Assembly: GCA_003427395.1 (NCBI GenBank)
Contig: BFEA01000036.1
Coordinates: 4,813,583-4,877,582 of the forward strand
Source: Chara braunii
Lineage: Eukaryota > Plantae > Charophyceae
Reading direction: 5' to 3'
Length of the DNA: 64,000 nucleotides
A program made the translations under genes and the position numbers. Within the stretch, counting starts at the first letter, position 1. Each line of letters begins with the position of its first letter. Of the stretch, positions 3,840 through 37,685 are shown in pieces. A model generated the notes under the pieces. That model was not told the DNA's origin, searched no databases, and saw only the letters and a program-made list of their open reading frames with translations.

Positions 3840-6800
3840 TCACTGATCCATTACGCCCATTTTCCCCCCGCATGTGAACAAACCCAACCTGTAAAATGCT
3901 TTGGTCCATATGCCACTGCCTTGCCTTTTGTTGTCTGCATCAGGCTCAATCGTCTTCGCGAGGTTGTAAACTTGCGGACACTCCTCGTCGTACCACAACT
4001 TAATCGAAGGCTCCAATGCCCACCAGTCAACTGCCTCCACGCCGACAACCCTTATTGCGTTCTTGTTTTCCATGATAGGAGGTCCTCCCATTTTATCGGC
4101 GTCTCCCATTTCTCATTACGCTTCCACTCGGACGATACATACAACATTTTAAACACAACGAAAAAATGAAAAAAATGCAATCCAATTGAACAATTAGCGA
4201 TGTGCTCTATATTGTTCGTATTGATCAGGTGATCCTCACTAAGACTCTTTCCCTCATCACGTCTACACAGATGTGTCTGAAGCAGATCTTATATTTTGCG
4301 TTGATGCAGGCATCTTGTTAGGGAAAGTCAACGACAACTGTGCATTGAGAGTCTCTCGCTTAGGGATCCGCATACCTGTCTCAGAGCGTTTATTGTTGGC
4401 CCACGTCTACACAACGACATCGAGGTCTTGCCCGTCGTCGCCAGATTCAGTTTCGACCTTCCATGTCTTTGCCCATGCGTCTGCATACAGCTTCGTTAAG
4501 TCACAATCCCTTCCGCAAGGTGTCCAATACTTGACGCGAATGCGATTATCATCTCGCTCCATAACGCGTCCAATTCAGAATGTGCAGCCCTTTGCAACAT
4601 AGTCCTCGGGTGCATGGAACACGACGAAGTTGTTGATGTCGACAGACTCATGTAGCTTCAACTCCGGTTTTGAAGCGTCTCTCTTGTAACCGACGAAGCG
4701 AGGTTTCCTCGGCGGTAAGCCGAGAACATGCGGCGTAACTGACATAAGGTCTTCTTTATCAGGTATGCGTGCTGACCAGAAGGCAACTTAAAGGGGCTTC
4801 GTACCGCTCTCCTCTTGTGATATGTTGTCAAACTTCTTGAGATGGTCGGTCCAGTAGCCCAAGCGTCTATATTTTGTCGCCCTTGTATGTTCGTCTTGTG
4901 TCTCCCATTGGATTTGTGAATTTTCTCACGATTTATGAAGAACACTCATCCCCGGTCCCCTGCTAGTATTCCGTTAACGAAATCGCCTGCCTGCGGGTTA
5001 GGCGACTCGCGGCAAGGCTGAAAACCCCATTGAGGCCCTGCCACCCGTTGTGAGCGTCCCTTTTAAACCAATACACAGGGCTAGTGTCTGACTCCCACTT
5101 TTTCTTGGTGCAAAACTTTGTATATATGATGGCGGGGTTGTCCCCATCCATGTAAAATCGAAAGAGGTGCGGCGCGACATGACCCTTGATTTTGTGATCG
5201 ATGTACGGGTCTATGGCGGTTTTTCAGTCAGCAATTTCAGTGAGCAACGAGCGGTCGACTTCCTCTTCGTAGGACGCTTTGAGGACATCGAAGAGCTCGT
5301 CCATGGTATAGGCATCGCAACCGCTCAATTTTTTAGCAAATAAGTTGAACTTTGCGTCTATGTCCGTGTGTGTGTGACCCACTATCATGAACCCTATTTC
5401 GACGACCTCGAATATACAAAATTTGACAAGCATGGTCATGAAGGTGAACACATACTTGTTTTTGTTTTGTCCCCCACATTAGTAAGCCTGTACCCGTAAT
5501 TTCGGTGAGAGCGCCCCTTCTCGTGCTTGGACATCTCTCAACACTTTGGCGATGGAGGTGACAACCGAGTTTGAGCCGTGCGACAAGTACGGAAACCATG
5601 TGTGGACAAAGAACGATGGTGTCCTACCGTGCGCGATTATCCCAGTGAGATTAGTTTTCATCATTATGTTATTCGACATTTATTTTAACAAGCGTCTTCT
5701 TGATGCATGGGGAATCGTTGTTTGTGCTTGCTAGTGATTCATATCATCGATGATGATACACAGGTCGTCTTGCTTTTGGTGTTCCGACTCGGCGGACCAC
5801 ACGCTATACAGTTTTCGGTATGCAGACTGTAATACAATGTGACTTTTCTCTTTTGCGACAAGTGTCTGTCTCGGCTCAGGCAGAGCCCCTTCTATGAGGA
5901 TGCTATTCTTAATGCACTCGTTGCATCCGCGTGGTTGGTCACCCTTGCCAGGCGAACGTGCCAGAAAAAGTCCCTAAACATCTTGTCGAAGACCTGGTAC
6001 GACGAGCAGCAGACACCAAGCTTAGAGAGTCGTCTACGAATAATGTGGAAGACGTCTTTCTTTGTGGCATACACCGACATAAGCTGAATGCGATTTCCGA
6101 TCTCGAAGTTCAGGCCTGTCTCAGTTTAATCTGGCATGGGATTAGACTCGTCAAAGATTATGTCCTCGAACACCGACCAGGTAATGGCGTAGGTGGTCGT
6201 TGTCCGCGGACGACCGTCATGACCGTGAAGAACGTCGACTGTTCCGCTTCGAGGTCTTCGCTGTATCTTTTGAATGTGTTCCTGTCGACGCTTAGTATGA
6301 GACACCAAGTAGTGACGCACACAGGGTGCAACTGCACTATCGGTTTAACTGTCGGCTTACGGTCAACTAACGAAATGAAGTTATCGAGTTTCGCTATTCA
6401 CCACTTCCGTCTATCCAGTCCTCTGAGAACGCAGTAGTCACATCTTCATTTCATCACGTCCTTTACTTTCAGTTTAAAAAGGCATTGAAACGTCTTGCAA
6501 CATGTTTTATGGAGGACGGCCTCACACTCGTCCACGCTACATGTACGTTCGAAAGTCGAGGTGGATGTAGAAGTACGTCTTTTCCCGAGTCTGTACGTGT
6601 ATTTTCTCTTTCCTTGTGCACCACACAACATAGATAAGACAGATATAGCAGTGTCCTCTCCAACAGGCAAGTCGATGTCCGACGAACGAGCAACATGACC
6701 TCCCCCCTCCCCCCTTTCATTGCCTTCGCCTGATGACGATGATAGCATGTCCATGGGAACATACCGGTCGTCATCGTCAGTTGCCGATGGCGAAATCACC

Positions 6801-7889: not shown

Positions 7890-8039
7890 CTGGTTCCATT
7901 TGTGTAACTGCGCAAGCACTGGATACTTGACGACCAACCATCTTTTCGAAAAATCATGGCCTGCACGGCATTAAAATTAAATAACAAAATAAAAAAAAAG
8001 GAACGAGAAAAGGGGGGAGAGTAATGGATGTTTCCCTTT

Positions 8040-9163
8040 CCTCATCCCTACCCACAACTATCAGACCCGATTTTTTTTTCGGAACAAAAAAAAACAAAAA
8101 GGTGGAGGGGGGGGGGCGATCGTCGATTCCTAATCCCACCCACGTTGCAATTCTAGCATGGCAAACAATCAAACATGACAACCGATCCTTTTTTTCCGGG
8201 GAAAAAAATACGCTGGGAAGGGGGGGGAGATCGGCGATTCTCACCTCCACCAGCATTGCGATTCTAGCATGGTAACTAACCCAACATGAAAAAACTGCCA
8301 TTTCGTCAAAATGGACATCTTTTATTTTTTGAACGAAATTGAAACCGAGTTTTTTGGCCCAAAACTCGACAAAATATGTCGTTCCTGAGGATCCGGCGTT
8401 TGTAAAACGCTGGACTCCCTAGCTGTACATGGACCTAGCTTGACACCAGGGACCTCTAGGCAGTCCTGCCTGGAGGTGCCTGGTCTCAAGCTAGGTCCAT
8501 GTACAGCCAGGGGGTCCAGCGTTTGTAAAACGCTGGTCCCCCTCGGGAACAGTAAATTTGGACGAGTTTTCGGCCAAAAAACTCGGTTTCAATTTCGTTC
8601 AAAAAAAAAAAAAAAGTCCATTTTGATGAAATGGTCGTTACAAACGATCCTTGTTTTGGGAAAAAAACAAAAAAAAATAGTGGGGGCGGGGGGGAGTTAG
8701 CGTTTTCCACCCCCACCGGCATTGCGATTCTAGCATGGGAACCAATAAAACATAACAACCGATCATTTTTTCCGAAAAAAAAAATGGTTGGGGGGGGGGA
8801 ATCGGCAATTCCCACCTCCACCCGCATTGCGATTCTAGCATGGCAACCGATCAACCATGTCAACCGATCCTTTTTTCACGAAAAAAAAAGCAAAAACGTT
8901 GGTGGGGGGGGGGAGGGGGGATCGGCGATTCCCAACCCCACCTGCATTGCGAGTCTAGCATGACAACCAATCTAGCATGACAACCAATCAAACATGGCAA
9001 CCGATCAATTTTTCCCAAAAAAAAAAACAAAGAGATTGGGGAGGGAGATCGGCGATTTCCAACCCCAGCCGCATTGCGATTCTAGCATGGGAACCGATCC
9101 AGCATGACAACCGATCCTTGTTTTAGGAGAAAAAGAAAAAAACGATTGGGGGGGTTGGGAGAT

Positions 9164-9165
<2 letters not shown>
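8040..9165 (+). repeat. Tandem array of ~110-bp units (6 copies), interrupted by a MITE
   Basis: Core gatcggcgattcccacccccacccgcattgcgattctagcatggcaaccaatcaaacatgacaaccgatcc recurs near 8150, 8260, 8727, 8832, 8952 and 9079, with variable poly-A/poly-G linkers. Confidence 0.9.
8293..8639. mobile_element. MITE family A (AAC...GTT ends, long TIRs, 4-bp TSD)
   Basis: Palindromic element. Flanks aaaa/acaa; it splits one array unit at catgacaa-cgatcc. Confidence 0.85.
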
Positions 9166-9225
<60 letters not shown>

Positions 9226-9226
9226 N

Positions 9227-9290
<64 letters not shown>

Positions 9291-9418
9291 AAGAAAATTC
9301 GGAGACAGAGAATGCGAGAGAAGAACTGCACCATAACCACCATCACGCACACTCCAACTCGAAAATTTATCGATTCATACACATTTGAAAGCTCACGTAA
9401 ACACCACACATACACATC

Positions 9419-9466
9419 GCCCCTACGCGTTTCACCGCTGGCGTATGCAGCGGACTCATCAGGGGC
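9419..9466 (-). ncRNA. Minimal type I hammerhead ribozyme (3' copy of PLE1)
   Basis: Minus strand: GGCCC-CUGAUGA-GUCCGCUG-cauacgc-CAGCGGU-GAAA-CGCG-UA/GGGGC. Core intact; one stem I mismatch. Confidence 0.8.
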
Positions 9467-10320
9467 CTTCTTCCTTCCCACTGAATCGAGATACTGTGCT
9501 CCTCCTCCACCAGTCCTTATAGTCTCAGTGCGCGTCCTAAACCCGCCACCTAATCCCCCACTTCTCCTAAAATTCAGTCCTACCGTCTACTATCCCCACC
9601 TAATCCTCTATTCAAGTCCTCCTTACTTCATGCACCACCTATCCCACCTACTCCCTCTTCCCCTAATACACATGTGTGCTTTTCACCTGTTCATCTAACC
9701 GGCCAACCTCCCGCCTTCCTTACCTTTCTTTCCTTTTTTTCTTCTTTTCCACTATCACTCCTTCTTCCTCTTCGTCTCCCACATGCTCTCCTTGCCCATC
9801 TCCTCCTCCTTCTCTCTCGTTGTCGTCCTCTCGTTCTTTTTCTCCCTTCCCCATTCCCTCGTCTCATTCTCCTCCCCATCTTACCTGACAACATCGCGCT
9901 GGTCCGATTCTTCCCCCTACAACTTTTCTCCACTTTCCAACAATAGGATCCCCTCCTTCCGGGCTTTGCACGCTCCCTCATTGCGTCGGCCAAACCCTCT
10001 ATGCCTCTCAGCCTTCGCGATCTTGCATGTCCTCCTCCCACCATCTTCGTCATCCCAAAATTAACCCGGCTACCGCGCGAGCGCGACCCCTCACCTCGAG
10101 TTCCCGAAGACCCAAACCGAAGCGGACACAGCCGATGCTGCATATCTCCAGACGTATCCCAAAAAACCTCACCCGGGTACTCACCTGGATCTTTATCAAA
10201 AATTCAAAATTGGTTCCGAAAACTAAAATTAAAATAAAGGGTAAAAAAAGGTAAAAAAACTTTCCCACCACACTAAACAAATTAAAAAACTGGAATACAT
10301 TGGATCTGCATCCCATGTTT

Positions 10321-13141
10321 TCATACTTCCCTTCGACCCAGAAATTCCCTGAGTCGGGGGTACTCAGCAAAGAGATAAACCCTCCACTGACCACCCGGCA
10401 TCCCGGCGAACCTCGCCAAGGCCCCGAGAGAGACCTCCGGGGGGTACCCCCGGAGGCGTATTTCCATCATTAAAGCCGCGATTGCAGCTTTCAAAGCCTC
10501 GTCCGATGTCGACATCCGATGTAACCGAATTAACGCAGCAAATATGGTGGCTTTCTTTGATGCTTTCCTTGTGAAGGAGGCGAAATCCTGTAACGATTGT
10601 ATATTCAGTTTCCCTTCCTCGCGCAGGCACTGTTGGTTTCCGGTCATGGGGTGTATCTCAATGCTAATAGGTGCCATCATGACGAAGACACGTGCCCCTA
10701 TGAAATCAAAGACATTCCCATTACCATCTTTCCGAACCAACATCATCATAGCATCCTTCAAACTCATCGAGTATCGTTGCAGCTTCCCCGGCCATACCCG
10801 GCCGGTTGGTTTTGAATCCAACCAGAACTGCTACGTCATCGATCATCCTCACCCCCCTCACTACCATCCCGTACCTGATCACACGTCTCATAAAAATCGC
10901 TTCCGATCTGGCACATACCAAACATGCTAACGACGGGCTGGAACTCCTCCCCATGGGAATCCCGAAGACCTGTCTCCGCATTGTTCCTGCACAACGGACA
11001 AAGGATTGCGATAATTCGAATTTTACTTCCTTCATAATGTCATCAAATGACAAGCTTACAAACCCATCAACCTTCCTCAGGTTCTTCGTCATTGCACACA
11101 TTTTTTCTCTCTGACTCACCCTCACCCCCCTCATCCCTTTCCTCTCATGATATTCTACCAACCAATTCACCGCCTCCATAACCTTTTGATGCGACGACTT
11201 AGCAAACATGTCCTTGATGTCGTAACTTCTCGCAAGCACTCCATCCCCACCCTTCCTCATCTCCCTCTGAAACGTTTCGCATCTCCCCTTCAGCTCGTCC
11301 GTTGATCTCAGGTCGAAGTGCTCGGATCTTCGAACAGTAAACAACATGTACCTAATTGCCCTCCCTACCCGTGCTCCTGCCAATCTAGCAGGGTCAGAAA
11401 CACATGGGGAAATCGACGCCATCGGCCCAGGTCTTTGTTCTTGGGAAGGACATAGGCCCGACCGATCTTCCCTCCTGTCTGCTACCGGGCTACTATCTTC
11501 AGCACCCGATCTTCTGTCTTGTCACAAATCTAAAAACTCTGATTCGAATTGAAGGTCTCCTTGAAAGCACGAAGGTAAAGGACCGGACAAACTAACAGCG
11601 TGGCACCAGGATTTCTGTCGATTGGAACCGCCACCAAATTCCTGTAATCTTGAAAACATAATCTAACTTCATTCACGCTCAGGTCTCCCCTCTTTCCATC
11701 GCATACCGCTCGGTAGCACCGATCGACTATCTCGCGAGGGCATTGGATCCTGCTTCCCCTTACCCACCCTCTGACTCCTTCTTCAATGCACCCCACCAAA
11801 GACTCCGGCGACACGCTGCACCCGTACGTCACGTTCTTCGAATTCTTCACAAAAGCTCGTAAGTCATCCATGTCACACAGCCTCACCTTTACGTGGCTGT
11901 CGGTTCTGGGCAGATCCAAGTGACCGCATGTACACACAACCTCCCTCTCATCTGCAACGTTCGAATGATTATGGATGATCATACCGACGTTCATTCTCTT
12001 CTCACCACTACCCTCACCCTTCCTGCTATGAAACGCGCAATATCTTGATCCACCACAACACTCTAAACGAACTCGGCCGCTACCTGTTTCACTGCATCCA
12101 GGTTTATGTTCGGAGAGAATGGTACCTTCACACATGGTTTCCTTCGAATCTCCTGTCCATATTTCCGCTTCACGATCCGTATCAGGACATTCTTCAGGTG
12201 ATACCTACTGCTCTTCTCTGAAAAGAGACCCGCGGTCGGGTACAGCGCAACTAACTCATGGGAGCTCTTGCTATACAACGTGCGTAACCTCCATGGCTAC
12301 ACCATGATATCCCTCAGAATATACTTCCGATGTTCGATACCGGATAGTAATACCTTCACCTTCACCACCTGAAATCTACCACCACCCTCCAAAACCTGCT
12401 TACATTCCTTCACGGGTCTCCTCACCTCCCCTACCATTATCACGCTCTCTCCCACTTTATCCCGCACCACTTTTCACTTATCACCCCATATCGTCCCTCC
12501 TGACACCTTTATATGGTGTACCCCACGTTTCCCTTTCATTTCCTTCAGTAGATCGACGAGTGAGACCCGATCATCGAACTTAATCATCGCTCCCCCACAC
12601 ACGTGTGACCCCCTCTTCCCCCTTTCCCTTTTCCCTCTCCTCCTCTTTGCCTTTCTCACTTCTCTTCCCATACCCTGCATATTCAGAGATGGTGAAAATC
12701 TACGGATCATCGCCCTCTCGAGAAAGCCCAGATCCTGAATCCCACTTACCAAAGGAATGACCAGATATTTCTCCCATCCAAAAATTTGAAGCCAAGCATG
12801 TAACTTCGGAGCATTTCCTATAACGCCGCTCGTCGCTAGCTTAACGTGATCGGACCACCTCTTGATTACGGTCTGCGTGGGCAACCGATGTAGAAATGTC
12901 GATACCATGGGCTTACTAATGCATACACCCCTGGATCTCGTGTAGAAAGCTCCCCTTCTTCACCACTAACCAGACCCACCCACTTCCTTCCCCACAGACA
13001 ATCTCCTCGGATAACACACAAGAGAAATATCCTAAATATCTGATCTTCCTGGACTGTATTCAATACCTCCCGGTGATCATTCACCCTCCCTCCCCGTGCT
13101 AACATAATCCTCTTCACCTCTTCCATACTGACCTCCTTCAC
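10321..13141 (-). pseudogene. PLE1 ORF2: N-terminal GIY-YIG endonuclease + Penelope-type reverse transcriptase (frameshifted)
   Basis: GVYALVSPWYRHFYIG...RWSDH...ERAMIRRFSPSLN (GIY-YIG); CTCGH...H linker; PIDRNPG, SYDIKDMF, QVFGIPMG, RMIDD, FDFIG (RT motifs). Confidence 0.92.
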
Positions 13142-14312
13142 TTCTCAAACAACGGAGAAATCCTTCCGCTTTCGCTGAACTCCTCGTAGGCCAGTTTTGC
13201 CCTGCACTTCACAAGCTCCCCGACAGCTACATCCTTTCGTGACCACTCGATCCCCTCCTCGTTACATAGCTTTCGCAACTCGGGCACCTTCTTAGCCGAC
13301 AGGTGCCTATGCATTTCAATCACAAAATCCAGCATCCTGGGGTCCGCCATGCCCACCTCTGGTTCCTTCTTAACAGGCGGAGGTGTCCGAATCTCTTCGT
13401 CATCGTCGATCCTTACCGGGTCGCCCCTGTTCCCGCGCCTCGGGATTCTCGAAATCCTTCCTTCCTCCCCAAGCATCTTGGCCTTCCCCTTCCTTCTCTC
13501 GATAGCCTCAACAAGCTTCCCTACTTCCTCTTTAACCTCCTTGCTGTCGTCCTCGGACTCATCCAAATAACTGCGTATTTCTCGAATGACTCTAGCTTTC
13601 ATTCTAGGTGATTTCTTCTTAACCCAGGAGCTCTCTGCCTTCGCATTCGACCGATTATGTTGCGCAAGCATACGAACCAGCTTAGCCTCTAATCGAGCCT
13701 CTCTCATATCTGCCTCCCTCATCCTTTCCTGTTCCCTCCTGTTTTTCTCCTCTCTCCGCCGTTTATCCTCCTTTTCCCTCCCCTTCCTCTCCTCCTCAAG
13801 TTTCCTCTTCCTAATCTTCTCCCGGAAATACTCACGCATTTCCTTTGTTTCGTCATCGACTGCTGCCGCCATTACGTTAGGATGCTGTTGAGCTGGAGGC
13901 CTTCCATTCCCCCCTGCCCAACAATTCCACGCGTAGTGGTCGGCCTTTCCGCACAGATCACACGATACAATCCCAAATTGATTTCCACCACCAACCCCAC
14001 CCCCGTATCCTTAGATCTGAGGAACCCCCCCGTTCTGCATCTGGGGAAATGCACCGTTCTGCATCTTTCTCACCGTTCGCCTCTCCTCCTCCACTGTCTC
14101 CTCCTCCTCCTCCTCCTATCTCTTACCACACACCCCACGCTGTACAGTTTCCCTAGGCACCTTTCGAGCTTGCTCACCAACTCCTCCCTCGAGCTCTCGT
14201 CCCTAAATTCTAGTACAACGAAAATCAAAGGTACTACACTATCGTAGATAATCCTCTCAAGATCTAACCATAACCTATCAAACTCCGCTTCCCTAAAATT
14301 CATGTCCGTCAT
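13138..14312 (-). pseudogene. PLE1 ORF1: charged coiled-coil protein with SAP-like C-terminus (frameshifted)
   Basis: ORFs 14070-14312 and 13138-13872. E/K/R-rich helix, then LSAKKVPELRKLCNEEGIEWSRK. Its stop overlaps the start of the ORF2 frame (GTGA). Confidence 0.75.
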
Positions 14313-14966
14313 CCCCCTCGCTTCTACCTTCGGTCATAAGTAACTCTAATGCGCACTTCGACTTCCCACACACTCTTGTCACTCTTCTTCCCAAACTGCC
14401 ACACCATCGATATACCGCATACGCTGAGCACGAGCACACATACATGACCAACCACCACTCTAAACCGTGCTATACCCTTCTTCACCATATCTTACCGCAT
14501 CACGCCGAGGGACGTACGAAATCATAAGACGAAGCTGCCGCAGTAATCGAAAACGATCACGCTTCCGTGATAGGCCGTAGCCACCGTGCGCGAAGAAGAA
14601 CACGCTCCTCACCCCTTACCGCAGTTCTCTTCATCCCGAAAACGATCACGCTTACCTGCTCGTCATAACAGCCGAGGACGATCACGCCGTGATGCTCCTC
14701 ATACCACCGAACAATCAAGATCCTCCTTGCCACATACGATGCTACCGAGGACGATCACGCTGCGGGACACACCGAACATAAGCCGTAGCCACCGTGAGAC
14801 GTCAACCATAACCGGTTACCACGTTCGATGAGAATAAAGAAAGTTCGGAGACAGAGAATGAGAGAGAAGAACTGCACCATAACCACCATCACGCACACTC
14901 CAACTCAAAAATTTATCGATTCATACACATTTGAAAACTCATGTAAACACATCACACATACGCATC

Positions 14967-15015
14967 GCCCCTACGCGTTTCACCGCTGGCGTATGCAGCG
15001 GACTCATCAGGGGGC
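14967..15015 (-). ncRNA. Minimal type I hammerhead ribozyme (5' copy of PLE1)
   Basis: GCCCC-CUGAUGA-GUCCGCUG-cauacgc-CAGCGGU-GAAA-CGCG-UA/GGGGC. Perfect 5-bp stem I, 6-bp stem II, palindromic stem III region ACGCGU. Confidence 0.85.
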
Positions 15016-15970
15016 TTCTTCCTTCCCACTGAATCGAGATATTGTGCTCCTCCTCCAGCAGTCCTTATAGTCTCAGTGCCCGTCCTAAGCCCGCCACCTA
15101 ATCCCCCACTTCTCCTAAAATCCAGTCCTACCGTCTACTATCCCCACCTAATCCTCTATTCAAGTCCTCCTTACTTCATGCACCGCCTATCCCACCTACT
15201 CCCTCTTCCCCTAATACACACGTGTGCTTTTCACCTGTTCATCTAACCGGCCAACCTCCCGCCTTCCTTACCTTTTTTTCCTTTTTTTCTTCTTTTCCAC
15301 TATCACTCCTTCTTCCTCTTCGTCTCCCACATACTCTCCTTGCCCATCTCCTCCTCGTTTCTCCCGTTGTCGTCCTCTCGTGCTTTTTCTCCCTTCCCCA
15401 TTCCCTCGTCTCATTCTCCTACCCGTCTTACGTGACAACATCGCGCTGGTTCGATTCTTCTCCCTACAACTTTCCTCCACTTTCCAACAATAGGATCCCC
15501 TCCTTCCGGGCTCTGCACGCTGCCTCGTTGCGTCGGCCAAACCCTCTATGCCTCTCAGCCTTCACGATCCTGCACGTCCTCCTCCCACCATCTTCGTCAT
15601 CCCAAAATTAACCCGGCTACCGCGCGAGCGCGACCCCTCACCTCGAGTTCCCGAGGACCCAAACTGAAGCGGACATAGCCGACGCTGCATATCTCTACAC
15701 GTATCCCAAAAAACCTCACCCGGGTACTCAACTGGATCTTTATCAAAAATTCAAAATTGGTTCCGAAAAATAAAATTAAAATAAAGGGTAAAAAAAGGTA
15801 AAAAAACTTTCCCGCCACACTAAACAAATTAAAAAACTAGAATACATTGGATCTGCAACCCATTTTTTCATACTTCCCTTCGACCCAGAAATTTCCTGAG
15901 TCGGGGGTACTCAGCAGAGAGATAAACCCTCCATTGACCACTCGACATCCTGGCCAACCTCGCCAAGGCC

Positions 15971-16060
<90 letters not shown>

Positions 16061-16769
16061 CTCTTACCTGACGGCGCGTTGGTGCTTGGTGCTGTACGGG
16101 CGATGGTCGCTGCCCAACTGGCGTCGTCTGGCGGTGCTCAATGTTCAGTGGCCACGCTGGTCAATGGTGAATGGGCGCGCTGTTGAAAGGTGAATGGGTG
16201 CGCTGCTCGATGTTCAATGGGCGCACTGCTCAATGTTCAATGGGCGCGGTGCTTGCTGTGCATGCCGCTCGGAAATAACGTCGCAAATGACAACTCCCTA
16301 CATGCACGGGTGGGTTTTGGTACGCAGTTTTTTGTTTTTTTTTTTCGGGCCTGGGTTGTTGGTGCCAGCTTTTTCCCGTTCGAGGACGTCGGGCCGTGCC
16401 GTTGGTGCCGGTCTCTTTTTCGCCGCTACCGGCCTGTTCTATTGGTGTCGGCCTCTTTCGGTGGTACCGGACCTCTTTTTCTGGTTCTGGCCTGTTACAA
16501 TGGTGTCGCCCCCTTTGTTGTCGGCATTCTTATTGCTGGTTGATTTCGTTGTGTTCAAGCCACCGAATTCATTTCGTGTGTTCACTGCGTTTGATTCGTG
16601 TGCTCAAGCCACCACGGTCGACTCTGGTCACTGCGTTTATTTTGCGTGCTCAAGACACCACGATCAACTAGTATTTCTCTTGCGGTCACTGTGTTGATTT
16701 TGTGCGTTGTGGGCCCCCCCAAGATCGCGGGAGGTCAGTTGCTCCATAATGGCTGCTACTGGTAAGATT

Positions 16770-17365
16770 CTCATGCTTGATTGGTTGCCATGCTAGAATC
16801 ACAATGCGGGTGGGGTTGGGAATCTCCGATCTCCCCCCCCAACCTTTTTTTTTTTGGGGGGGGAAAGGATCGGTTGTCACGCTTGATTAGATGCCATGCT
16901 AGAATCACAATGCGGGTGGGGGTGGGAATCGTCGATCTCCCCCCCAACCTTTTTTTTTTTTTTTGGGAAAAAGGATCGGTTGTCACGCTTGATTAGTTGC
17001 CATGCTAGAATCGCAATGAGGGTGGGGGTGGGAATCGCCGATCTCTCCCCCCCACAACCTTTTTTTTTTTTTTTTTTTTCGAAAAAAGGATCAGTTGTCA
17101 CGCTTGATTAGTTGCCATGCTATAATCGCAACGAGGGTGGGGGTGGGAATCGCCGATCTCCCTTCTCCCCCCAACCTGTTTGTTTTTTTCCGAAAAAACG
17201 ATCGGTTGCCATGTTGGATTGGTCGCCATGCTAGAATCACAATGCGGGTGTGCGTGGGAATCGCCGAACTTCCCCCCGAAACCTTTTTTCTTCTTTTTTT
17301 TTTGGAAAAAAGGATCGGATGTCATGCTTGATTAGTTGCCATGCGAGAATTGCAACGCGGGCCGG
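16770..17365 (-). repeat. Tandem array of ~110-bp units (6 copies), inverted relative to 8040-9165
   Basis: ggatcggttgtcacgcttgattagttgccatgctagaatcgcaatgcgggtgggggtgggaatcgccgatct is the reverse complement of the left-array core. Confidence 0.9.
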
Positions 17366-17404
17366 GGTGCGGGGGNNNNNNNNNNNNNNNNNNNNNNNNN
17401 NNNN

Positions 17405-18554: not shown

Positions 18555-18757
18555 TTTTTTTGGTCGAAAACTCGTCAAAATTTGTTGTTCCAGGAGGTGC
18601 CTGGTCTCAAGCTAGGTTCATGTACAACCAGGGGGTCCAGCGTTTGTAAAACGTTGGGCCCTCAGAAACAACAAATTTTGACGAGTTTTGGGCCAAAAAA
18701 CTCCGTTTCAATTTCCTTCAAAAAATAAAATATGTTTATTTTGGCGAAATGGCAGTT
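18555..18757. mobile_element. Truncated MITE family A copy
   Basis: Matches the right half of 8293-8639 and ends in gaaatggcagtt. Confidence 0.8.
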
Positions 18758-20419: not shown

Positions 20420-23400
20420 TTTGCGCAAGTCACTTGCTCTGTTGGTCTACTGGTTACTTTCTCCTTTCGCGGAACACTTCTATGTCGGTTGCATCAGTAG
20501 ATCATTGAATCTTAGATGGTGTGAGTATCTAGTCCACACTACACTCGCGCACAATCTTATTGTTGGGATGCGCAATTACAAGCTTTATGAATGACTTCGG
20601 AGAACTTACGTCTATCACTATGTCACACTCTCTCTCGATTTTGTTCATTCTTCTCAACGTCGGAAGAATAAACAATCATAGGATGGTTTTCTTTTTATCT
20701 CAACTCATGCCCAACTAGTCACAGAAGAAAAAAAAAAAGAACAAGAAGGTCAGACAACGAAACATAGAGAGAATAAGTAAGGTGAGAAGATAGCAGCAGT
20801 TAAGTACGCAACCCCTTGGGAATGAGGTTGTTACTGAAGAGTAAGGTATTCTCCAATAAGAGCAGAAGGTTAGCTAGTTTCACTTCATCCTTTGGTCTCA
20901 TCTCCGTCTCACTTCTGCTTATTCTCAACGAGGGTGTGAAGAATTGTATTAGTTTATTTTCCATTGTTGCGAAAAGAGAGTGCTTATGATGAGACTCACG
21001 GAAAGTAATAAAGAGAATGTTTGGGGCATCGGTTGCACTAGTACTTATGGACGTGACCAATTGAAGTATTTTCGAGGATGGTTTGAGATTGGTTATGTGG
21101 TTAACGCCGTATCTAGGGTATAATTTTGCTCTCCTTCTTAAAACTTGAAACCGCTCATTTCACGTTTGTTGAGTCACCCTAACGAAAGAAGATCTTTATG
21201 CGTTTGGCATCTCGGTAATATGATAAATGTCATTCCCTATGAATTTATTCCTTGTTTTTCGAGGAAAGTTTCCAGGCAATCTCTTCGAGTGATATTGTTC
21301 AATAATATCCGTCAAAAAATTAAATTATGTTCGCGAAGGCGCCTTATTTTCATATTGCGATTTTCAAATATGATCTATAAGTCCTTCATTTGATCATTAT
21401 GTGATTGTTTGATACGAGGATCATCTCCCTGCTTCTTTGACGGACTTGCTTGCTAGGAGAATGAAAGTTGTTTGGACGAAGAACTACAACTTAGCAAAGT
21501 TGCTACATAACTTTCATTTTTATTCTCGCTTGCCTGGAATGGATGTACTTGGGGAGGTTTGTCACTGTCATGAGAAGTTGATGCAATACTAGCACCAATG
21601 GATCACATCATTATATCTGTTTCATCTTCACCCTTGTCATATTCATAGTTTCTTTATCCCCACCATCCCTTTGCTCCTCCTCCTCCCCGTCCTTCTCCTC
21701 TTCCTTCTTCTTCTTCTTCACCTTTATCCCAATCTCTCGTATCCGATCTCAATTTTTTCATCCCTCTCTTTTTTTTTCTTTTTTTGCTTATTCTTGTTTT
21801 TTTGTTCAGTCTTCCTTGGTTCATTTTTTCTCGTCTCTCCTTTTGATTCACTCGACTTTATTCTTCTCTTATTCTCTTATCTTTGTCTGGTCTACTCAAT
21901 CTTCATTTTTTTTTTTTTATTATCCTTTCTTTCTTTCTCCCCCTCCTTTTCGCCCTGTTTGTCTCCTCCTTCAACTCTTAATCCTTCCCTTTCTCTCTCA
22001 CACTTTCCTTCTTTGGTTACCTCTGTATCCCCTAATAATGTGTCTCACTCATTTCTTTTCTCGTGTTCTTTCACCCCCATTTCACTACCTGCCCCCATGC
22101 ACTATCCCATTTTTGGCTCATCCCCCCTGCACTCCTCGCACTGTCCCTCCCTTAGAACCTTGTGCGACGTATCCTCTGCTAACTTCGCTATGTTCTCCCC
22201 TCTTCACCATCGACTTCCCCATGAACTAAGGTCTCACCAATGCAAGTATTGCCGAACTTGTCGTCTCTTCTCCCAGTAGTCAACGACCATATTGTGTTTC
22301 GTGGGCAGGATTCTCACTTTATTCCTAGTTGGCTCTGCTCCCTCCGCAATTTTAGGAATGTCTCACCCTCGTCTCGAACCTATGGTCTAGCATTTTTGCG
22401 ATCTCAGATAAAACAAAAAAACAGAATAACATATTTTATCCTACTCTGATACATTATTCAATGTCTCCATACCTTATTCTTTCTTGCTTTCCCGTTTGAA
22501 ATCTCATACTCTCAGGAAAGTCATGTTCGACCCTTTCTCATACTATCCCTTCTATTAACTCCCTCATCATACTGAACAACAGCCGCACCTTACCTTTGAC
22601 GCCTGAGCGTGCGAAGGTATGAAAATAGTTGATGGAAGGATTGAGATTGATCCCAATTTACCATAATCTGGGTGATACGTTCTTCTGTTTTCCAATATTC
22701 TATAAGTCTGGTATGCACTCATACTTCTTAGTCTATAAGTCTGGTATGCACTCGTACTTCTTAGATAACTTGGGGTTTAACAAAGGACTGTCATTCGAAG
22801 TATCTGGACTCAAGATTCAATTCTATTGGCTTTTGGAATTCCAACGGTTGGTTTCGGGAAGGGTACACTATTCCTAAGCACAAGAACACATATAAGTGGC
22901 GACCTATATGTCCCACATCATCTGCACACTCGTCGGCTAGATGCAAGAGAGTCACCTCTTGCCTTAACATCCTCATCAAGACACTTCTCACCAAACTGCA
23001 CTTCAATATTTTTAGTACCAAAAAACTGATATATGCTCTAACTACGGTCAATGGGTTCATTCTTCCAACTGAAGACTTGCTTTCTGCAAGCTATGATGTT
23101 AAAGAGATGTTTACCAGACTGTCCCACTCCTTGATCCTCGACGTAGTTTGATGGTTCACCTACTACTTCCAACTACAGGGATATGAGGGTGTTTGGGTAA
23201 GAACGAGGGGAAAAGGAAACCAAGATTTTGCTTAGAACATATTGTTTAAAAAATAAGAAATTTGTTGGGTTTGATTTAAGTAACACATACGATACGACAA
23301 TGAAGCGACTACTTAAGCCGGAGGCTTGGAACTTGAGGTACCTTTGGGAAAGCCTTATAGCCCAACGATGACACATGTGCTATGCATATTCAATGAATTA

Positions 23401-24760
23401 AATTTTCTGTGTTCTTGGGTAAGGAGTGTGTTTTTATTCATGGTGCTGGTTTAGTTGATGACGTATCAACTTTTGTTAAATTCATGAGAGGTAGTGCAAC
23501 TCATGTCGTGAACTAGGCGTGTTATTTCGACGTTTTTTTTCTAAACTTTCGATGAATTTTGCACCGAAATTTCTGGCGAAAATGACGAATATTTGGCCCC
23601 CCATTAACCATGTCTCATCACAACCAATATCTTTTAGGTAGTATACAATTTTTTAATATTTGTCCAGTGAATAATAAATTATTAAAAATTGATGGTAATT
23701 AGTTTTTTTCTTCACTGTCCAAAGTTTTTTATAACAATGTCTGCAACATAGGGCAAGCAACGAGGATACGCGAAGGATTATTTCGATAATGCATTGTCAG
23801 TGTTGTATGCAAAGTTCGTCGGCTGTTGGGATGAGTGGATAGAGTGTCTTACCAAATGGGACATGCTCGTTGAGGAAATACCTTTGAATACTAAGGGGAA
23901 ACTGAAACATAATCGCACTAGAATCAAGGCAAGGGACTTCATTAAGTGACTGATTGACAACCATAGGTGGGTGTGTTGATTAGGCAGGCTGATTCTAAGA
24001 AGATTTGGCTTAATCGTACTATTAGGCTATTGTGGTGCTGGGGCCTAGAGGAGTGGTTGGGTTATTCTTTTGGGAGTCTGCAGATGTGCAAAACTATATT
24101 GGGTGTATGTTTCGGGTAGAATTTTTGTCTGGCCCGGAAACTTTGTCGCCAATAGTCGGTTAAGTTAGTTCAAACAGGTCTCTCCAACACGGTCTATAGT
24201 TTATGAATGCATTTGGTGATGTTCCCTGCATAGTTCAAAAGGTTAGGTGGGACAACAAGAACACTATGTCACAACGAGGACTTAGCCTCCGCCGGATCTT
24301 CAGCGTACTATAATAACCAAGTCGACGTGGTGTTTTCCCTCTTGAGTTAGCCAGTGAAAGCGTGTGCTTCGCCAGTGGTCCTTCTACATCCTTCAACCCT
24401 CGAGCATCTTCCGATCCTAGTTCGTTTCGCTTCATTTGCACTCTGTCTTCTACGATTGTTTGTTCCTGCAGTACTCTTCGGTCACTTCGACTACTACCTT
24501 TAGTCCGTCCGCGATTGTACTTCTACAACATTATTCATATCATCTTTGAGTGGTGGGCAATGCGATCCCTTGCACTCGTTCTCGAGAGTTAAGTGACCCT
24601 TCCTCCTCATTTATCTCCATCAACTTCAATTCATGCTCCTGAGTGGCTTATTTTTACCCTCTCGAGTGTTTCACTTTTGACCTTAGTGATTGCCCCTGAA
24701 GATGAATGGTTATTGGCGCTGGTCGAAACATGTCAGGCGCAACCAGTACGTGTTTCTGTT
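20420..24760 (+). mobile_element. Penelope-like element 3, highly degenerate (copy a)
   Basis: LVYWLLSPFAEHFYVGCIS...RWCEY (GIY-YIG, ~20440), SYDVKEMF (~23090), LVDD (~23455), and a hammerhead remnant near the 3' end. Boundaries approximate. Confidence 0.8.
24690..24742 (+). ncRNA. Degenerate hammerhead ribozyme (PLE3)
   Basis: ttgccc-CTGAAGA-tgaatggttattggcgctggtc-GAAA-CATG-TC-aggcgcaa. Core present, stems eroded. The paralogue at ~60284-60336 is more mutated. Confidence 0.55.
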
Positions 24761-29736: not shown

Positions 29737-30296
29737 AATTTTTTTCTTTCGGGCGAAGATGCACTCCACATGTTCTTCTTTTGGTGCGTAGTAAAGGGAA
29801 TAAACTGTTTTTGAGGCATGTACGAAGTGTTCATATTTCCTCTTGCCAGGAGGATTCTACATAGTGGTTTGCAGACTTATACGAAGCGTTCATATTTCCT
29901 CTTACCTGGCTGAATGAGAATAAACTGTTTTTGGCGGGAAGGGGGTTTTCTGGTACTCTAAGCGGAATTGTGTAGACCCGGCCTCAATTACTTTTTTTTT
30001 TGTAAAGGGGTCCATGCCGTTGTACTTTATCATTATATATTTCAAAAAGTCGCGTTCAGTAGTTTTTCACTATGCGTATTATCCTTCCTTCTTCTCTCTG
30101 TGTGTTTGTCTACCCCCTTTGACCCTCTGTCTCGATTTGGCTCTGCCTTTGATTGGTCCTCGTCTCTTTCCATGTTGATGACGTCACTATTGAATGCGTA
30201 TTAACGAAGGCTTTGTGTTTTCACATAATACTTCAACTCACGAAGTAACGTCCGTAAGAATTATACTACGTGAACGTGTGACTTCGACTTGTTACT

Positions 30297-31629
30297 ATGG
30301 CTTCAAACCTACCTACCTCTACTATTGTTTATACATGCTTTAATTATGGTGATCCCAAGATTCCCAACCATTTTGCTAGATGGTGTCCGCATCCCCGTCA
30401 AGTTGCGTCAACCTCAGAGTAACGTTGTTGTTCCCGCACGAGCCCCTTTATCGACTTTACCTTCTAGCTCTGCCCCGTCGACTGCTATTGTGTCCCATGT
30501 TTCTAATCCTGCAGGTTCCTATCAAAGAGACAATGTATGGTACCAAGCACGTCAGCGTTTGGAGTACCTGGAAGGCACAGTTGCCGCCATCAAGATTCGA
30601 TATGACGTCGATGTCGAACGTGAGAAGACAAAACAGGTTAAAGATGAGAAATCGAAGAAAGACCAGGAGGATGACGAAAGGAGGGCTAAAGATAGAAGGG
30701 AGTGTGAGGACTTTCAGAGGCAGTTGACCGAGTGTATGAACAGCAAACTAGACACGGTGTGCTTGGCGCTTTCAGGTTTAGAAGTTGGAGAACATGGAAG
30801 CATCGCGCAAGGGTGCGGCTCCTCTTGGCACGGTAGTGCACGCCTCTGTCTCGCACAACAATGATGATGTTTTGGCTAGACTGCTGACGGATCAGGAGAA
30901 GATGAAGATTCAGCTTGATGAAGCGCTGGCCGCAAGGCGGCGGATGAAAATTTTGGAAAAAGAAATGATGACTATTCGGCTCGCTAGGGATAAAGCACGT
31001 CCCGAAGCTGAAGCTTGGAGGCAGGAGTCTACTCGGTCTAGCTCCAAACGTGGTTGTGTGGCACTTTCTACTCCGAATGCTCAGGCTACTACTCTGCCAC
31101 GCCAGACTCCTGTCAAGGCTCCTACGGTTCGGGTTGAGTACAAGGACCTGAAGCACATGCATCAGCTTGAGGTCGATACACTCCAAGAGATGAGGCTGCG
31201 TGAGATGAATAGTAGGAGGGAAGCAGAGCAGGAACTTGAGGTTGCCAAGGAGAGAATTGCACAGCTGAAGGCAGAGAAGGTTAGCAAAACTCCTCTCTCA
31301 AAATTCAGGGTTTGACTGGATGAAGCCGGTGTGAAAAGTTCCGCCAAAGGAAAGAAGAAGATTGTCAACAAGCAGATGACTAAGTTGAATGATCGGGAAG
31401 CCTTCATCAAGGAGACACGCAAATCCTTGCCAGTAAAGAAGGATAAGCAGACAACAATCTGCGTTCAGGAAGGCATAAAGTATACTACTATTTGACTATT
31501 GATGAGATTGTGGCAAAACGGGTGTTGGAAGCTTTTCCTCCGGTCAAAGATAACTCGGTGGTTGACGTTTCGGAAGATTTGGGTGGGGACGACTCTACGA
31601 GTGCCGGTGATGAGTCTACAGCATCTTAG
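30297..31629 (+). pseudogene. PLE2 ORF1: CCHC-like knuckle + long coiled coil (frameshifted)
   Basis: The ATG at 30297 reads MASNLPTSTIVYTCFNYGDPKIPNHFARWCP. Coiled-coil ORFs 30289-30864 and 30785-31315. C-terminal ICVQEGIKY resembles PLE1 LCNEEGIEW. Confidence 0.7.
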
Positions 31630-31643
31630 GGTCTCTCCCGGAC

Positions 31644-33429
31644 GTGGATGATCTATGGTTATTAGCGCAACGTTCTTGTAAGTTGAGATCTTCTTATTCT
31701 ACTTCTCGTCTTCGATGTCAGGTGCTGAATTCTTTTTTCCAAGTTGTGGTGACTGCCTTTGTCCTCCAAGGATGCATTCCTTGGGCTTCAAAGTTCGCTG
31801 GATGTATTGCTGACTCATGGCTTGTAGGGGATGATTACAACAAAGGTTCGTTGGTATACTTATTGGTTTCGCCCTGCTGCAGATATGTATATATAGGTAG
31901 TACTGAAAAAGATCTCCATTCGAGGTGGTGTGAACATGTGTATCAGGCTTGTAATGATAATTTGATTTCTAAGACCAGTAGAAATGAACGACTGTATGGA
32001 TGGCTTCGACGGTGTGGGATTCAGCAGTATGTGGCGATTCCGATTTGGTTTTCTTCCCTAAGTGATTTGCTCTCATTAGAGAACTTCTTCATTCAGCAAT
32101 TTAGTCCCTCACTTAATTTGAGGGGTGTTCCAAGGAAGTGTAGGAGAAAACGACCTGGTAAGAAAGAAGTTCAAAGAACGTGCCAAAAAATCCGCCCGTT
32201 ATATTGCTTATATTACCGTAGTTTCTGCAGTATCTTTTTCCTCTGATCATGTTCTTCACGTTTCCTCTTCCTCTTCTTCTTTCACGTCTGTCTTAAAATC
32301 ATTTCGTTCTTTCCCCTTGGTATTTTGTTCTTCAAATGGTGTTATCTCGACTAGCCTACTTCAAGTTCTTAATTCTGCTTCTAATGCTGGTGTGCCTACC
32401 CTGATTGTTGTTTGCAAAGGAGGTTGTGACGAACCACTTTCTGTCTCCGTGCGATTTTCTGCGCGATGACAATGAGGGGTCCTAAGCTGGGAAGGTTGGG
32501 CCAACTACGGGAGATCGGGATCGACGGAAAAATTGCATCGGTGTCCTCGCTTCTTCGTCTTTTTTGCGTCGCTCCTTTTCGAATGGCCGGGCTCAGAGTT
32601 GGGCAAGTCCCGGGATGATCGGTTGAGTGCCGCGCCGACACGTGCGCGATTAATAATGGTTGACGTCGCTTATTTTTGTTTTGCTGTCGGGTTTTTGGCG
32701 CGGTGATCGCGCGGGAGTTTTTGCTTCTCTCTTTTTGAAATTCTCTTCCGAATCTTGTCAAGCCCTCGATGACTCTCAGAATTTCGGACTTTCTTTTCGG
32801 AATTGTGCTTTATTTCTTTTTGCATTTTTGCATTAGATAGGAATTTAGAAATTTGGAACTTCTTTTGTTGCGCAGTGCTTTTTGCTTGCGCGACTATTTT
32901 TTCGGCAGCAACGGAGCTCTGATTAGCCGACGCCCTTAATCTTGCGTGTAACCGTAATTTTTGGGCGGGCGCCCTTGTAACTGTATCTTTCTTCTTGAGC
33001 TTCGTCTTTCCCCCTCTCCCTCTCTTCTTTGCAGTGTCTAATCGGCCCGCAGGCTGCATGATCGGATCAATGCGTGGAGAGCGGCTACGTTCCCCACGCC
33101 TCGATCTGTCCATGCGGAACGTAGGCATTCGCTCCCCTTCTTTCCTTCTAAGTCCTTGCAATTCCGTGTTCTTCTCGCATGGGATTAGATAGCTCTCTCA
33201 AACAAATGCTGGAAGCTCGGGGTAGCACGATCAGTGAGGGTCGGCTCACGAGCGAAGTAAGAGGTGAGTGAAGTGGGACTTGGGCGACCCGACGAGCTGG
33301 TGCTGAATGTGCAGGATTGACGCGTGGGGCTACGACGGACTATAGCGTGCGGGCGAATCCAACGGGCACAGGAGGACTAAGCGGGGTGACAACTTCGTGG
33401 GTTGGTGTGTGACAACGAACTGTCCGCAT

Positions 33430-33498
<69 letters not shown>

Positions 33499-37640: not shown

Positions 37641-37685
37641 GACCCCTGATGATGGCTGGTTGGTGGGCCAGCCGAAACTAGGGTC
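37641..37685 (+). ncRNA. Minimal hammerhead ribozyme (PLE2 3' end), stem III shortened
   Basis: GACCC-CTGATGA-T-GGCTGG-ttggtggg-CCAGCC-GAAA-C-TA/GGGTC. Perfect 5-bp stem I and 6-bp stem II. Confidence 0.75.

Follow-up and report, generated by a model that had tools for sequence, protein, structure and literature searches.

The window, i.e., the whole 64-kb stretch of Chara braunii DNA analyzed here, carries a dead, decayed copy of a Penelope-like element (PLE) on its minus strand (9284..15980), which forms a partial tandem of 1.2 units inside a (GA)n microsatellite. Taken together, the observations are probably best explained by a Chlamys-type PLE with a selected hammerhead motif, copied from a linear template of more than unit length.

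Anatomy, coding content and decay of the element

Self-BLAST and junction views delimited an insertion of 6,697 bp, corresponding to 1.21 units (6,697/5,548), in the order pseudo-LTR, leader, ORF1, ORF2, pseudo-LTR. The 5' pseudo-LTR (14830..15980, 1,151 bp) and the 3' pseudo-LTR (9284..10433, 1,150 bp), both on the minus strand and found by self-BLAST, form a direct repeat with 95.4% identity over 1,152 columns and a period of 5,546-5,548 nt; the opening ~110 nt of the 5' copy duplicate the final ~36 codons of ORF2. The junction views placed (GA)n microsatellite sequence on both sides, at 9166..9283 beside the 3' end (run 9166-9287) and at 15981..16055 beside the 5' end (run 15973-16055). Both junctions show microhomology to (GA)n, and at the 3' one the last GAGA of the microsatellite overlaps the end of the element.

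The first-pass annotation had described a two-ORF PLE. The order of endonuclease followed by reverse transcriptase (RT) is supported; both ORFs, however, are remnants. The ORF1 remnant (13141..14010, minus strand) encodes a gag-like CCHC zinc knuckle (CX2CX4HX4C, 13962..13921), followed by a lysine/glutamate-rich stretch that is coiled-coil-like by appearance, and carries a stop between the probable start and the knuckle; a zf-CCHC domain was detected in relatives. ORF2, distributed among three frames and carrying at least four frameshifts and at least three in-frame stops, begins with a GIY-YIG nuclease region (12681..13126, minus strand; GVY...YIG at 12931..12881, R/H at 12866..12843, E/N at 12722..12681) that is itself interrupted by one frameshift. 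Between nuclease and RT lies a CxC motif (CTC; 11905..11940, minus strand), which is diagnostic of Naiad/Chlamys PLEs (PMC8557442). The RT and C-terminus (10324..12204, minus strand) run through three frames to a stop at 10324, with RT motifs A (11224..11204), B (10963..10919) and C (10849..10823) recognizable in the window copy.

Using a 266-aa piece of the RT as query, 443 protein matches were obtained, and all ten whose names were checked (nine among the top 21, plus P0021) were Chara braunii proteins, the nearest annotated one showing 73% identity. The relatives have a GIY-YIG-like segment N-terminal to the RT, whose predicted fold (pLDDT 80) matched I-TevI/UvrC GIY-YIG domains in all of its top 12 PDB matches (best TM 0.76), and an RVT_1 match was present in 4 of 16 relatives (best E 2.4e-08). 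We are therefore highly confident that this is a Chara PLE of the Chlamys type, with a CCHC ORF1 and an ORF2 composed of an N-terminal GIY-YIG nuclease, CxC and RT. The copy is transcriptionally silent in three oligo-dT-selected RNA-seq runs, of which 6-13% each was sampled: these yielded 26 partial reads over the element, and none of them at either predicted hammerhead cut.

A conserved hammerhead in both pseudo-LTRs

The window contains exactly two instances of a 39-nt motif comprising CUGAUGA, stem II, GAAA, CGCG and UA, both on the minus strand (15010..14972 and 9462..9424). The 5' hammerhead (14964..15017, minus strand; 81.9 bits; predicted cut 14972/14971) has a 5-bp stem I, the core CUGAUGA...GAAA, a palindromic ACGCGU stem III and A17; stem II consists of 6 bp plus a G.U closing pair, with a bulged U. 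The 3' hammerhead (9416..9469, minus strand; 76.1 bits; predicted cut 9424/9423) has an identical core, and a C-to-G substitution at RNA position 2.4 (window 9466) weakens its stem I to 3 bp, a mismatch and 1 bp. A distance of 5,548 nt separates the two predicted cuts, and the element continues for 140 nt beyond the 3' one, to 9284. This anatomy, with paired hammerheads in a 1.2-unit copy and a 3' overrun, confirms what the first-pass annotation had proposed, as does the presence in both pseudo-LTRs of a minimal type I hammerhead with palindromic stem III. Since the 1.2 units of the insertion form a partial tandem, both motifs represent one pseudo-LTR motif copied from one repeat, so that the window holds a single event and independent support has to come from relatives.

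Such support was found in a sample of eight loci, picked via annotated gene models, in which many pseudo-LTR ends are assembly gaps. Homologous motifs scoring 59-82 bits lie at the same position in L001, L003, L004 (two), L005 (two), L007 and L008, and conservation of the hammerhead extends over six related Chara braunii PLE families. The motif forms an island of 73% identity between flanks that are only 26-38% identical. Pairing is retained in 92.5% of the alignment cells, compared with 31-57% when the partners are slid; the covariation score was equalled in only 3 of 500 shuffles. The first-pass annotation had named a lack of covariation in stems I and II as grounds for refuting its reading; compensatory changes are present in both stems, with three pairs altered on both sides. 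Co-folding of two copies gave the expected dimer, in which the ACGCGU stem III is intermolecular.

It is hardly credible that the motif is a chance or relic sequence devoid of ribozyme function. A hammerhead profile search had also been suggested by the first-pass annotation, and here the outcome was negative: the Rfam models gave no hammerhead in the window, even at E<=10. The MFE z-scores of the single copies (-1.1 and -0.1) are likewise unremarkable, and most PLEs with an N-terminal endonuclease thrive without hammerheads. Against a chance origin, the 39-nt motif was recovered in 0 of 100 shuffled sequences and the stem-aware scan gave no match in 50 block shuffles; no variation is seen in the core among families whose RTs share only 50-60% identity, and the compensatory changes and the conservation island point in the same direction. 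Judged by its sequence, the hammerhead is a genuine minimal type I ribozyme of the dimer-dependent sort known from PLEs, and it is very likely a selected functional motif.

Fixed insertion ends and the form of the RNA template

The ends of the copies are fixed, but not at the ribozyme. A conserved 10-bp GC hairpin followed by UCUCUCUC (10426..10456, minus strand) lies within the C-terminal coding sequence of ORF2 (LRGYPPEVSL) and marks the same boundary in L002, L003, L004, L006 and L007. The 5' end of the window PLE (15980) is the first base past this hairpin. When copy ends were mapped relative to the cut, as the first-pass annotation had envisaged, all six informative 5' ends fell just past the conserved hairpin, ~1 kb 5' of the cut, and none of the six at the cut itself. 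The 3' ends of four copies lie within (TC)n, 93-150 nt beyond the cut and immediately before a conserved block (GCGUGGUAACCG, 17-20 nt, CGGUGGCUACG; 14783..14829, minus strand; six families compared), which is located directly 3' of the insertion end point and is absent from the copied 3' ends. A sister element in the same window, PLE2, begins exactly at its own predicted hammerhead cut and ends 50 nt beyond its 3' hammerhead.

Most likely, the copy was made by target-primed reverse transcription at the (GA)n microsatellite, on a linear RNA that would be longer than one unit and have its hammerheads uncut. RT would initiate within the RNA, at a UCUC site ~140 nt downstream of a hammerhead and adjoining the conserved RNA block that is not copied, and would terminate at a fixed point immediately 3' of the GC hairpin, where UCUCUCUC provides a second match to the target; this meaning of the start and stop sites is what we infer from their positions. 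A linear, more-than-unit RNA is favored by the 5' ends after the hairpin (6/6) together with the start of PLE2 at its cut, and a PLE2 copy that starts at the cut yet runs 50 nt past the 3' hammerhead is not easily made by a circle. For an anole PLE in vitro, hammerhead cleavage was dispensable, RT initiated internally ~90 nt 3' of the cut and no RNA ends were found at the cut (PMC11167929); the 93-150 nt in the Chara PLEs represent the same geometry. On this evidence a linear rather than circular template is somewhat favored.

According to one alternative, which we consider unlikely, a 1.2-unit transcript is cut at both hammerheads and the ligated 5,548-nt monomer, which would contain every cis element and both ORFs, is reverse transcribed from the UCUC site for 1.2 rounds. 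This circular-RNA life cycle, inferred by the first-pass annotation, was proposed in almost identical wording in 2014 (Cervera & de la Peña 2014, PMC4209133); it is not new, and it gains no support from the present data. Exactly one full unit is flanked by two hammerheads, as a circle would predict, and such circles are used by plant and animal retrozymes; none, however, has been demonstrated for any PLE. Religation would also leave no RNA ends at the anole cut, but insertion of that element in vitro was unaffected by hammerhead mutants (PMC11167929). RT would have to traverse the hairpin once and halt there on its second pass, and the ends of PLE2 would require one site to be still intact when RT first crosses it and already cut when RT comes round again, which is unworkable on one circle. 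Dimer-type hammerheads are moreover poor cis partners at 5.5 kb spacing, and cleavage by PLE hammerheads in vitro is weak (PMC4209133). None of the 26 partial reads from the oligo-dT runs lies at either cut; a religated junction would in any case be identical in sequence to the genome.

Three further observations concern the linear and circular forms. A circle copied 1.2 times reproduces the anatomy of the PLE equally well. In every informative copy the pseudo-LTR includes the hammerhead, an arrangement that a circle requires and a linear template does not. A 1.2-unit transcript has the uncopied block only near its 5' end and none 3' of the last pseudo-LTR, since only a circle or a tandem places the block after a complete unit; if the block is required for initiation, the template would be a tandem transcript or a permuted or circular RNA.

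It is also conceivable, but quite improbable, that a unit-length RNA was used in combination with a template jump. The 5' pseudo-LTR would then be an upstream promoter driving transcription from the conserved block (~14829); the RNA would run into flanking (UC)n that anneals to the nicked (GA)n target, and RT, on reaching the RNA 5' end, would switch to a second RNA, in its 3' part, and stop at the hairpin, thereby forming the 5' pseudo-LTR. In this scheme the 5' hammerhead would never be transcribed. The position of the conserved block exactly at the unit boundary and the (GA)n microhomology at both junctions fit this proposal, as do the promoters carried by the pseudo-LTRs of Penelope and Chlamys-3_cRei and the reported competence of PLE copies only when more than unit length. 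The strong conservation of the hammerhead, however, would be left without a reason. The 5' end of PLE2 at its cut shows that transcripts start 5' of the upstream hammerhead, at least in the PLE2 family, and it is ad hoc to assume that RT jumps seamlessly to an internal or exact 3' end.

Comparison with known systems

The element type is already known: by description, the window PLE matches Chlamys-2_cBra, the second Chlamys-type (N-terminal GIY-YIG) PLE of Chara braunii, for which an upstream CCHC ORF and a 3' hammerhead are described by Craig et al. (2021; PMC8557442). Both share an N-terminal GIY-YIG without upstream CCHH, followed by CxC and RT, a gag-like zf-CCHC in the upstream ORF, a hammerhead near the 3' end, and partial-tandem pseudo-LTRs with insertion into microsatellites. 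The closest relatives of the window PLE are likewise Chara braunii proteins; the likeness is drawn from the published description, and with 73% RT identity to the nearest protein the two may be the same or sister families. The window target is (GA)n, whereas (CA)n and (C)n are listed for Chlamys, and the text consulted makes no mention of a hairpin-adjacent fixed 5' end or an uncopied conserved block (PMC8557442).

With the minimal type I hammerheads of metazoan PLEs (Cervera & de la Peña 2014, PMC4209133; also Lünse et al. 2017, cited from PMC7761336), the motif shares a conserved core in both pseudo-LTRs, a long helix II (7 bp) with an unpaired base on its 5' side, a short helix I (5 bp) free of loop-loop contacts, and a palindromic helix III pairing between two copies. 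Unlike these, it belongs to an N-terminal-endonuclease element of a streptophyte alga and is recognized as a ribozyme from sequence only; the plant PLEs examined in 2014 had canonical rather than minimal hammerheads (PMC4209133).

Retrozymes, both the plant LTR type and the metazoan non-LTR type, similarly hold one unit between two hammerheads, a layout in which cutting at both would free a monomer whose ends can be ligated. They are small (170-1,000 nt), non-coding and non-autonomous, with demonstrated circles, and those of plants have type III hammerheads, PBS/PPT sites and 4-bp TSDs, whereas the window PLE measures 5.5 kb, is coding and autonomous in design, and has a type I hammerhead and a circle that is only proposed.

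The anole element, Poseidon PAc of Anolis carolinensis (Frangieh et al. 2024, PMC11167929), differs in its C-terminal endonuclease, single ORF, AT-rich targets and a hammerhead overlapping the ORF start, whereas in the window PLE the start site lies in the untranslated leader and has UCUC microhomology to the (GA)n target. In both, copies are tandem or partial tandem, and the hammerhead lies a short distance 5' of the insertion end, which suggests that RT initiates internally on an RNA that continues 3'.

Structure and decay of the element

The Penelope-like element (PLE) is a retroelement of 6,697 bp on the minus strand of the window (15980 to 9284). A direct repeat of about 1,150 bp, located at 9284-10433 and 14830-15980 (95.4% identity over 1,152 columns, period 5,546-5,548 by self-BLAST), forms pseudo-LTRs that arise from partial tandem insertion, a feature by which membership of the Naiad/Chlamys PLEs is recognised. 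A (GA)n microsatellite is present at both element ends (9166-9287 and 15973-16055), the GA/TC microhomology at the junctions amounts to 4 and 8 nt, and no target-site duplication was recognisable at these two junctions of the window copy. The microsatellite target recurs in relatives, where (GA)n was found at six further 5' junctions and three further 3' junctions. Either side of the PLE-bearing (GA)n is occupied by arrays of a satellite of ~105-115 bp (8069-9159 and 16726-17369), which are inverted relative to each other and whose individual arms of 70-165 nt are complementary at 73-88%. The (GA)n target was situated in the middle of an extensive palindromic repeat structure. The whole region is bracketed by short repeats of 72-164 nt (8293-8611 and 18590-18757; 86-93% identity), direct as well as inverted and ~10 kb apart, which look like MITE-type elements.

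The upstream open reading frame, ORF1 (14010..13141, minus strand), encodes a CX2CX4HX4C knuckle (13962..13921) and, after it, a stretch rich in lysine and glutamate that resembles a coiled coil. ORF2 starts a few codons past the ORF1 stop and carries, on the same strand, a GIY-YIG endonuclease (EN; GVY...YIG with the R/H and E/N residues, 12931..12681) N-terminal to the reverse transcriptase (RT), a CxC motif (CTC, 11940..11905) in the EN-RT linker, and RT motifs A, B and C (11224..10823). The CxC motif is found also in the homologous protein P0004 and is retained in the consensus of 16 relatives. Inspection of the window copy, P0004 and P0008 showed no CCHH zinc finger among the ~60 residues ahead of GVY. 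Pfam found nothing at E<=0.1 on the ten ORF fragments of the window copy, none of them being long or intact enough, so that relatives were used for the domain searches. Pfam zf-CCHC was matched in the relatives P0005, P0013 and P0019, and RVT_1 in 4 of 16 relatives (best E 2.4e-08), while GIY-YIG gave sub-threshold Pfam matches only (E 0.002-0.13). An RT query of 266 aa (11521..10724) retrieved 443 homologous proteins, 66 of them at E<=1e-30, and all ten RT matches whose names were checked (nine of the top 21, plus P0021) come from Chara braunii; when the RT alignment was searched as a profile against PDB, no TERT or RT match was obtained at E<=1. For the EN domain, the PDB profile search placed I-TevI at the top (E 0.077). 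The best 12 PDB matches of an AlphaFold model of the relatives' EN domain (pLDDT 80) were I-TevI and UvrC GIY-YIG structures, with a TM of 0.71-0.76 for I-TevI, and the EN of the window copy is 54-61% identical to the modelled relatives. Compared with intact relatives, ORF2 passes through frames 2, 1, 3, 2 and 3, i.e. at least four frameshifts, and is interrupted by three or more in-frame stops, and in ORF1 a stop codon lies ahead of the knuckle. The window copy is dead.

The hammerhead motif and its conservation in relatives

Within the 64 kb, a 39-nt motif (CUGAUGA, stem II, GAAA, CGCG, UA) is found at exactly two places, 15010..14972 and 9462..9424; shuffled sequence contained none. The cuts predicted after A17 (14972/14971 and 9424/9423) are 5,548 nt apart, and the element runs 140 nt beyond the 3' cut. 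The first-pass annotation had already reported the motif in each pseudo-LTR, the cuts, the monomer length and the 3' extension; its coordinates and arithmetic proved exact. The motif folds as a type I hammerhead with stem I open, in which the catalytic core (C3-A9, G12-A14, A15.1-U16.1, H17) is complete and in the correct order in both copies. Stem I comprises 5 bp (GCCCC/GGGGC), stem II consists of six Watson-Crick pairs, is closed by a G.U pair and has a single bulged U on its 5' side, and stem III is shrunk to the palindrome ACGCGU. When two copies were co-folded as a dimer, a double hammerhead with an intermolecular 6-bp stem III was obtained at -46.7 kcal/mol, compared with two times -21.5 for the monomers. 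In the 3' copy, C is replaced by G at position 2.4 (window 9466), which disrupts one pair of stem I; the replacement represents decay after insertion, since relatives carry C at that position. The Rfam hammerhead covariance models, proposed at first pass as a check, did not match the motif: cmscan found no hammerhead in the window at the gathering threshold nor in 9000-16500 even at E<=10, as expected for a variant without helix III. The only Rfam matches, Virus_CITE_1 (10415-10504, a chance match on a conserved hairpin) and mir-500 (on the microsatellite), were discarded.

A second AYGYGU element, conserved immediately downstream of stem I, is located 8-14 nt 3' of each cut (14950-14963 and 9402-9415, minus strand). 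It reads AUGCGU in the window copy and ACGCGU in the related loci L003 and L005, at the same place in relatives, and is able to base-pair with the palindrome of stem III. For the 5' copy, the MFE fold is the hairpin formed in this way, whose loop holds the cleavage site. Such a pairing may provide an alternative hairpin or, in the dimer, a further duplex between the two molecules, and may act as an on/off switch.

Since the two motifs of the window belong to one repeat, independent support was sought in eight related PLE loci of Chara braunii (L001-L008). A homologous hammerhead is present at the same relative place in six of them (L001, L003, L004, L005, L007 and L008), with two copies each in L004 and L005. 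A covariance model scored the homologous motifs at 59-82 bits, and no other sequence in 198 kb reached a comparable score. Among ten aligned copies the core is invariant except for position 7, which is free to vary in hammerheads, and a C3-to-A change in the 5' copy of L004. The alignment used for covariation is small (10 rows from 7 elements); in it, 92.5% of the cells are paired, compared with 31-57% when the partners are slid by 1-3 columns, and only 3 of 500 shuffles reached the observed covariation score. The ACGCGU palindrome or a wobble-compatible variant is kept in all copies, and the motif forms an island of 73% identity between flanks of 26-38% (seven families). Covariation in stems I and II, on which the first-pass annotation had let its proposal depend, is indeed present at three pairs with changes on both sides, namely CG/UA at one pair of stem I and UA/CG at two pairs of stem II. 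The hammerhead is under selection.

Two further hammerhead-like motifs on the plus strand (24696-24734 and 60290-60328) were dropped as comparators: their stems I and II pair poorly by eye, and the covariance model was silent at E<=1. They lie ~1.3 kb downstream of RT-like fragments (22855-23424 and 58627-59090, one each), and the copy at 60290 has G for C3.

Fixed termini and the RNA template

The ends of the copies were mapped relative to the cut, as had been suggested at first pass, in the informative copies. At the 5' side, the six informative copies (window, L002, L003, L004, L006 and L007) all end at one place, in (TC)n, and none of the six ends at the hammerhead cut. Their common start, UCUCUCUC, lies directly 3' of a conserved 10-bp GC hairpin within the last ~36 codons of ORF2 (LRGYPPEVSL); hairpin and UCUCUCUC occupy 10426-10456 (minus strand) in the window, inside the coding sequence of the ORF2 C-terminus, and the hairpin is found at the same site in L002 (~7924-7954), L003 (~9545-9577), L004 (~9315-9347), L006 (~9258-9286) and L007 (~11349-11378). 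It shows a compensatory change in L003, and it is this piece of DNA that BLAST recovers in each of the eight related loci. The hairpin could serve to stop RT, to start transcription or to bind a protein. At the 3' side, the ends of the four informative copies (window, L001, L004 and L005) lie 93-150 nt beyond the cut, again in (TC)n, and immediately before a conserved block that consists of GCGUGGUAACCG, 17-20 nt and CGGUGGCUACG. This block (14783-14829 in the window, minus strand; homologous in L003, L004, L005, L007 and L008) is kept in six families and never copied into the 3' end, which makes it a candidate RT/RNP recognition element for internal initiation.

Some apparent ends proved misleading. 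A first reading of the self-BLAST results, in which short pseudo-LTRs excluded the hammerhead in most relatives, was rejected, as the repeat ends turned out to be uninformative: they are assembly gaps filled with N or, for L008, the palindrome of a Nextera adapter. In that locus (12374-12411, BFEA01000228.1) the Nextera transposase adapter and its reverse complement are located at the pseudo-LTR end as an assembly artefact, and runs of N are found at several other pseudo-LTR ends (L002, L005, L006 and L007). PLE termini in the public C. braunii assembly must therefore be read carefully.

Three oligo-dT RNA-seq runs carrying the same species label contained 26 partly fitting reads, none near either cut and almost all at 10415-10467, in the hairpin region, with loose ends belonging to other families; neither joints nor end pile-ups occurred. 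The window copy is silent.

A sister element in the window, PLE2 (30008-37730, plus strand; EN 31923-32168, RT 35345-37074), has a single hammerhead at 37646-37680 (25 bits with the same covariance model). Its first base, 30008, is the base right after the predicted cut, and it ends 50 nt past its 3' hammerhead, so that 50 nt are shared by its termini (30008-30057 = 37681-37730). This implies that the template of PLE2 was an RNA with a hammerhead-cleaved 5' end. The ends would fit a linear RNA cleaved at the 5' hammerhead and uncleaved at the 3' one, and one circle would be unable to yield them.

For the element under study, we somewhat favour a linear template of more than one unit. In the Chara PLE lineage, RT would begin immediately 5' of the conserved, never-copied block and halt right after the hairpin. 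In the anole PLE (Poseidon of Anolis carolinensis), RT starts internally ~90 nt 3' of the cut, no RNA ends at the hammerhead cut, and hammerhead mutants leave in vitro insertion unimpaired (PMC11167929). A circular RNA as template appears unlikely to us: the hammerhead does lie always within the pseudo-LTR, as such a circle would have it, but the ends of PLE2 cannot come from one circle and no such circle has been reported in the literature for any PLE. A religated junction has the same sequence as the genome. A unit-length RNA combined with a template jump would be a further route to the same tandem, and we consider it the least probable of these explanations.

The circular template gains from one further point: if the conserved block is required 3' of the RT start, the linear transcript of a 1.2-unit copy has none in the right place. 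A complete template would then be obtained from such a copy only once both hammerheads had cleaved the RNA and its ends had been brought together again, in a circle or with stems I and III holding a nick in place, which we regard as quite improbable. If true, this cycle would make the element the first autonomous, protein-coding one with a retrozyme-like circular RNA cycle. The interpretation given in the first-pass annotation is supported in part. Its circular RNA is not a new inference, as it was proposed for PLEs, nearly in the same words, by Cervera and de la Peña in 2014 (PMC4209133).

Relation to known systems

As found, a dead and silent copy of a known type is of little importance. Its value is modest and lies in being a clean natural example: the fixed termini of the Chara elements, together with the 5' end of the neighbouring family at the cut, constitute a defined system for the role of PLE hammerheads, the purpose of which is still called a mystery by reviewers (PMC7761336). 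Element type, hammerhead and circular-template hypothesis had each been published before.

By its combination of features rather than by consensus sequence, the element is Chlamys-2_cBra, the second of the Chlamys types described by Craig et al. (2021; PMC8557442). This assignment is based on the N-terminal GIY-YIG without an upstream CCHH, the CxC motif, the RT, the pseudo-LTRs, the microsatellite target, the zf-CCHC ORF, the 3' hammerhead and the relatives in Chara braunii. The missing CCHH separates Chlamys from Naiad and places the element on the Chlamys side, and both subtype features of Chlamys-2_cBra, a gag-like zf-CCHC in the upstream ORF and a 3' hammerhead, are present in the window copy. 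Chlamys-2_cBra is one of two exceptions to the rule that PLEs with an N-terminal EN lack canonical hammerheads (PMC8557442). Retrozymes are small, non-coding and non-autonomous units between hammerheads, which accumulate as circular RNA, whereas the unit described here comprises 5,548 nt with remnants of ORF1 and ORF2 and thus falls outside that class. In the minimal hammerheads published for PLEs, helix II is long, helix I is short, and one base is left unpaired where stem II begins at its 5' end; the hammerhead of the window agrees with them in all three respects (PMC4209133). Moreover, the geometry of the window copy and its relatives, with 3' ends 93-150 nt past the cut, parallels the ~90 nt of the anole PLE (PMC11167929).
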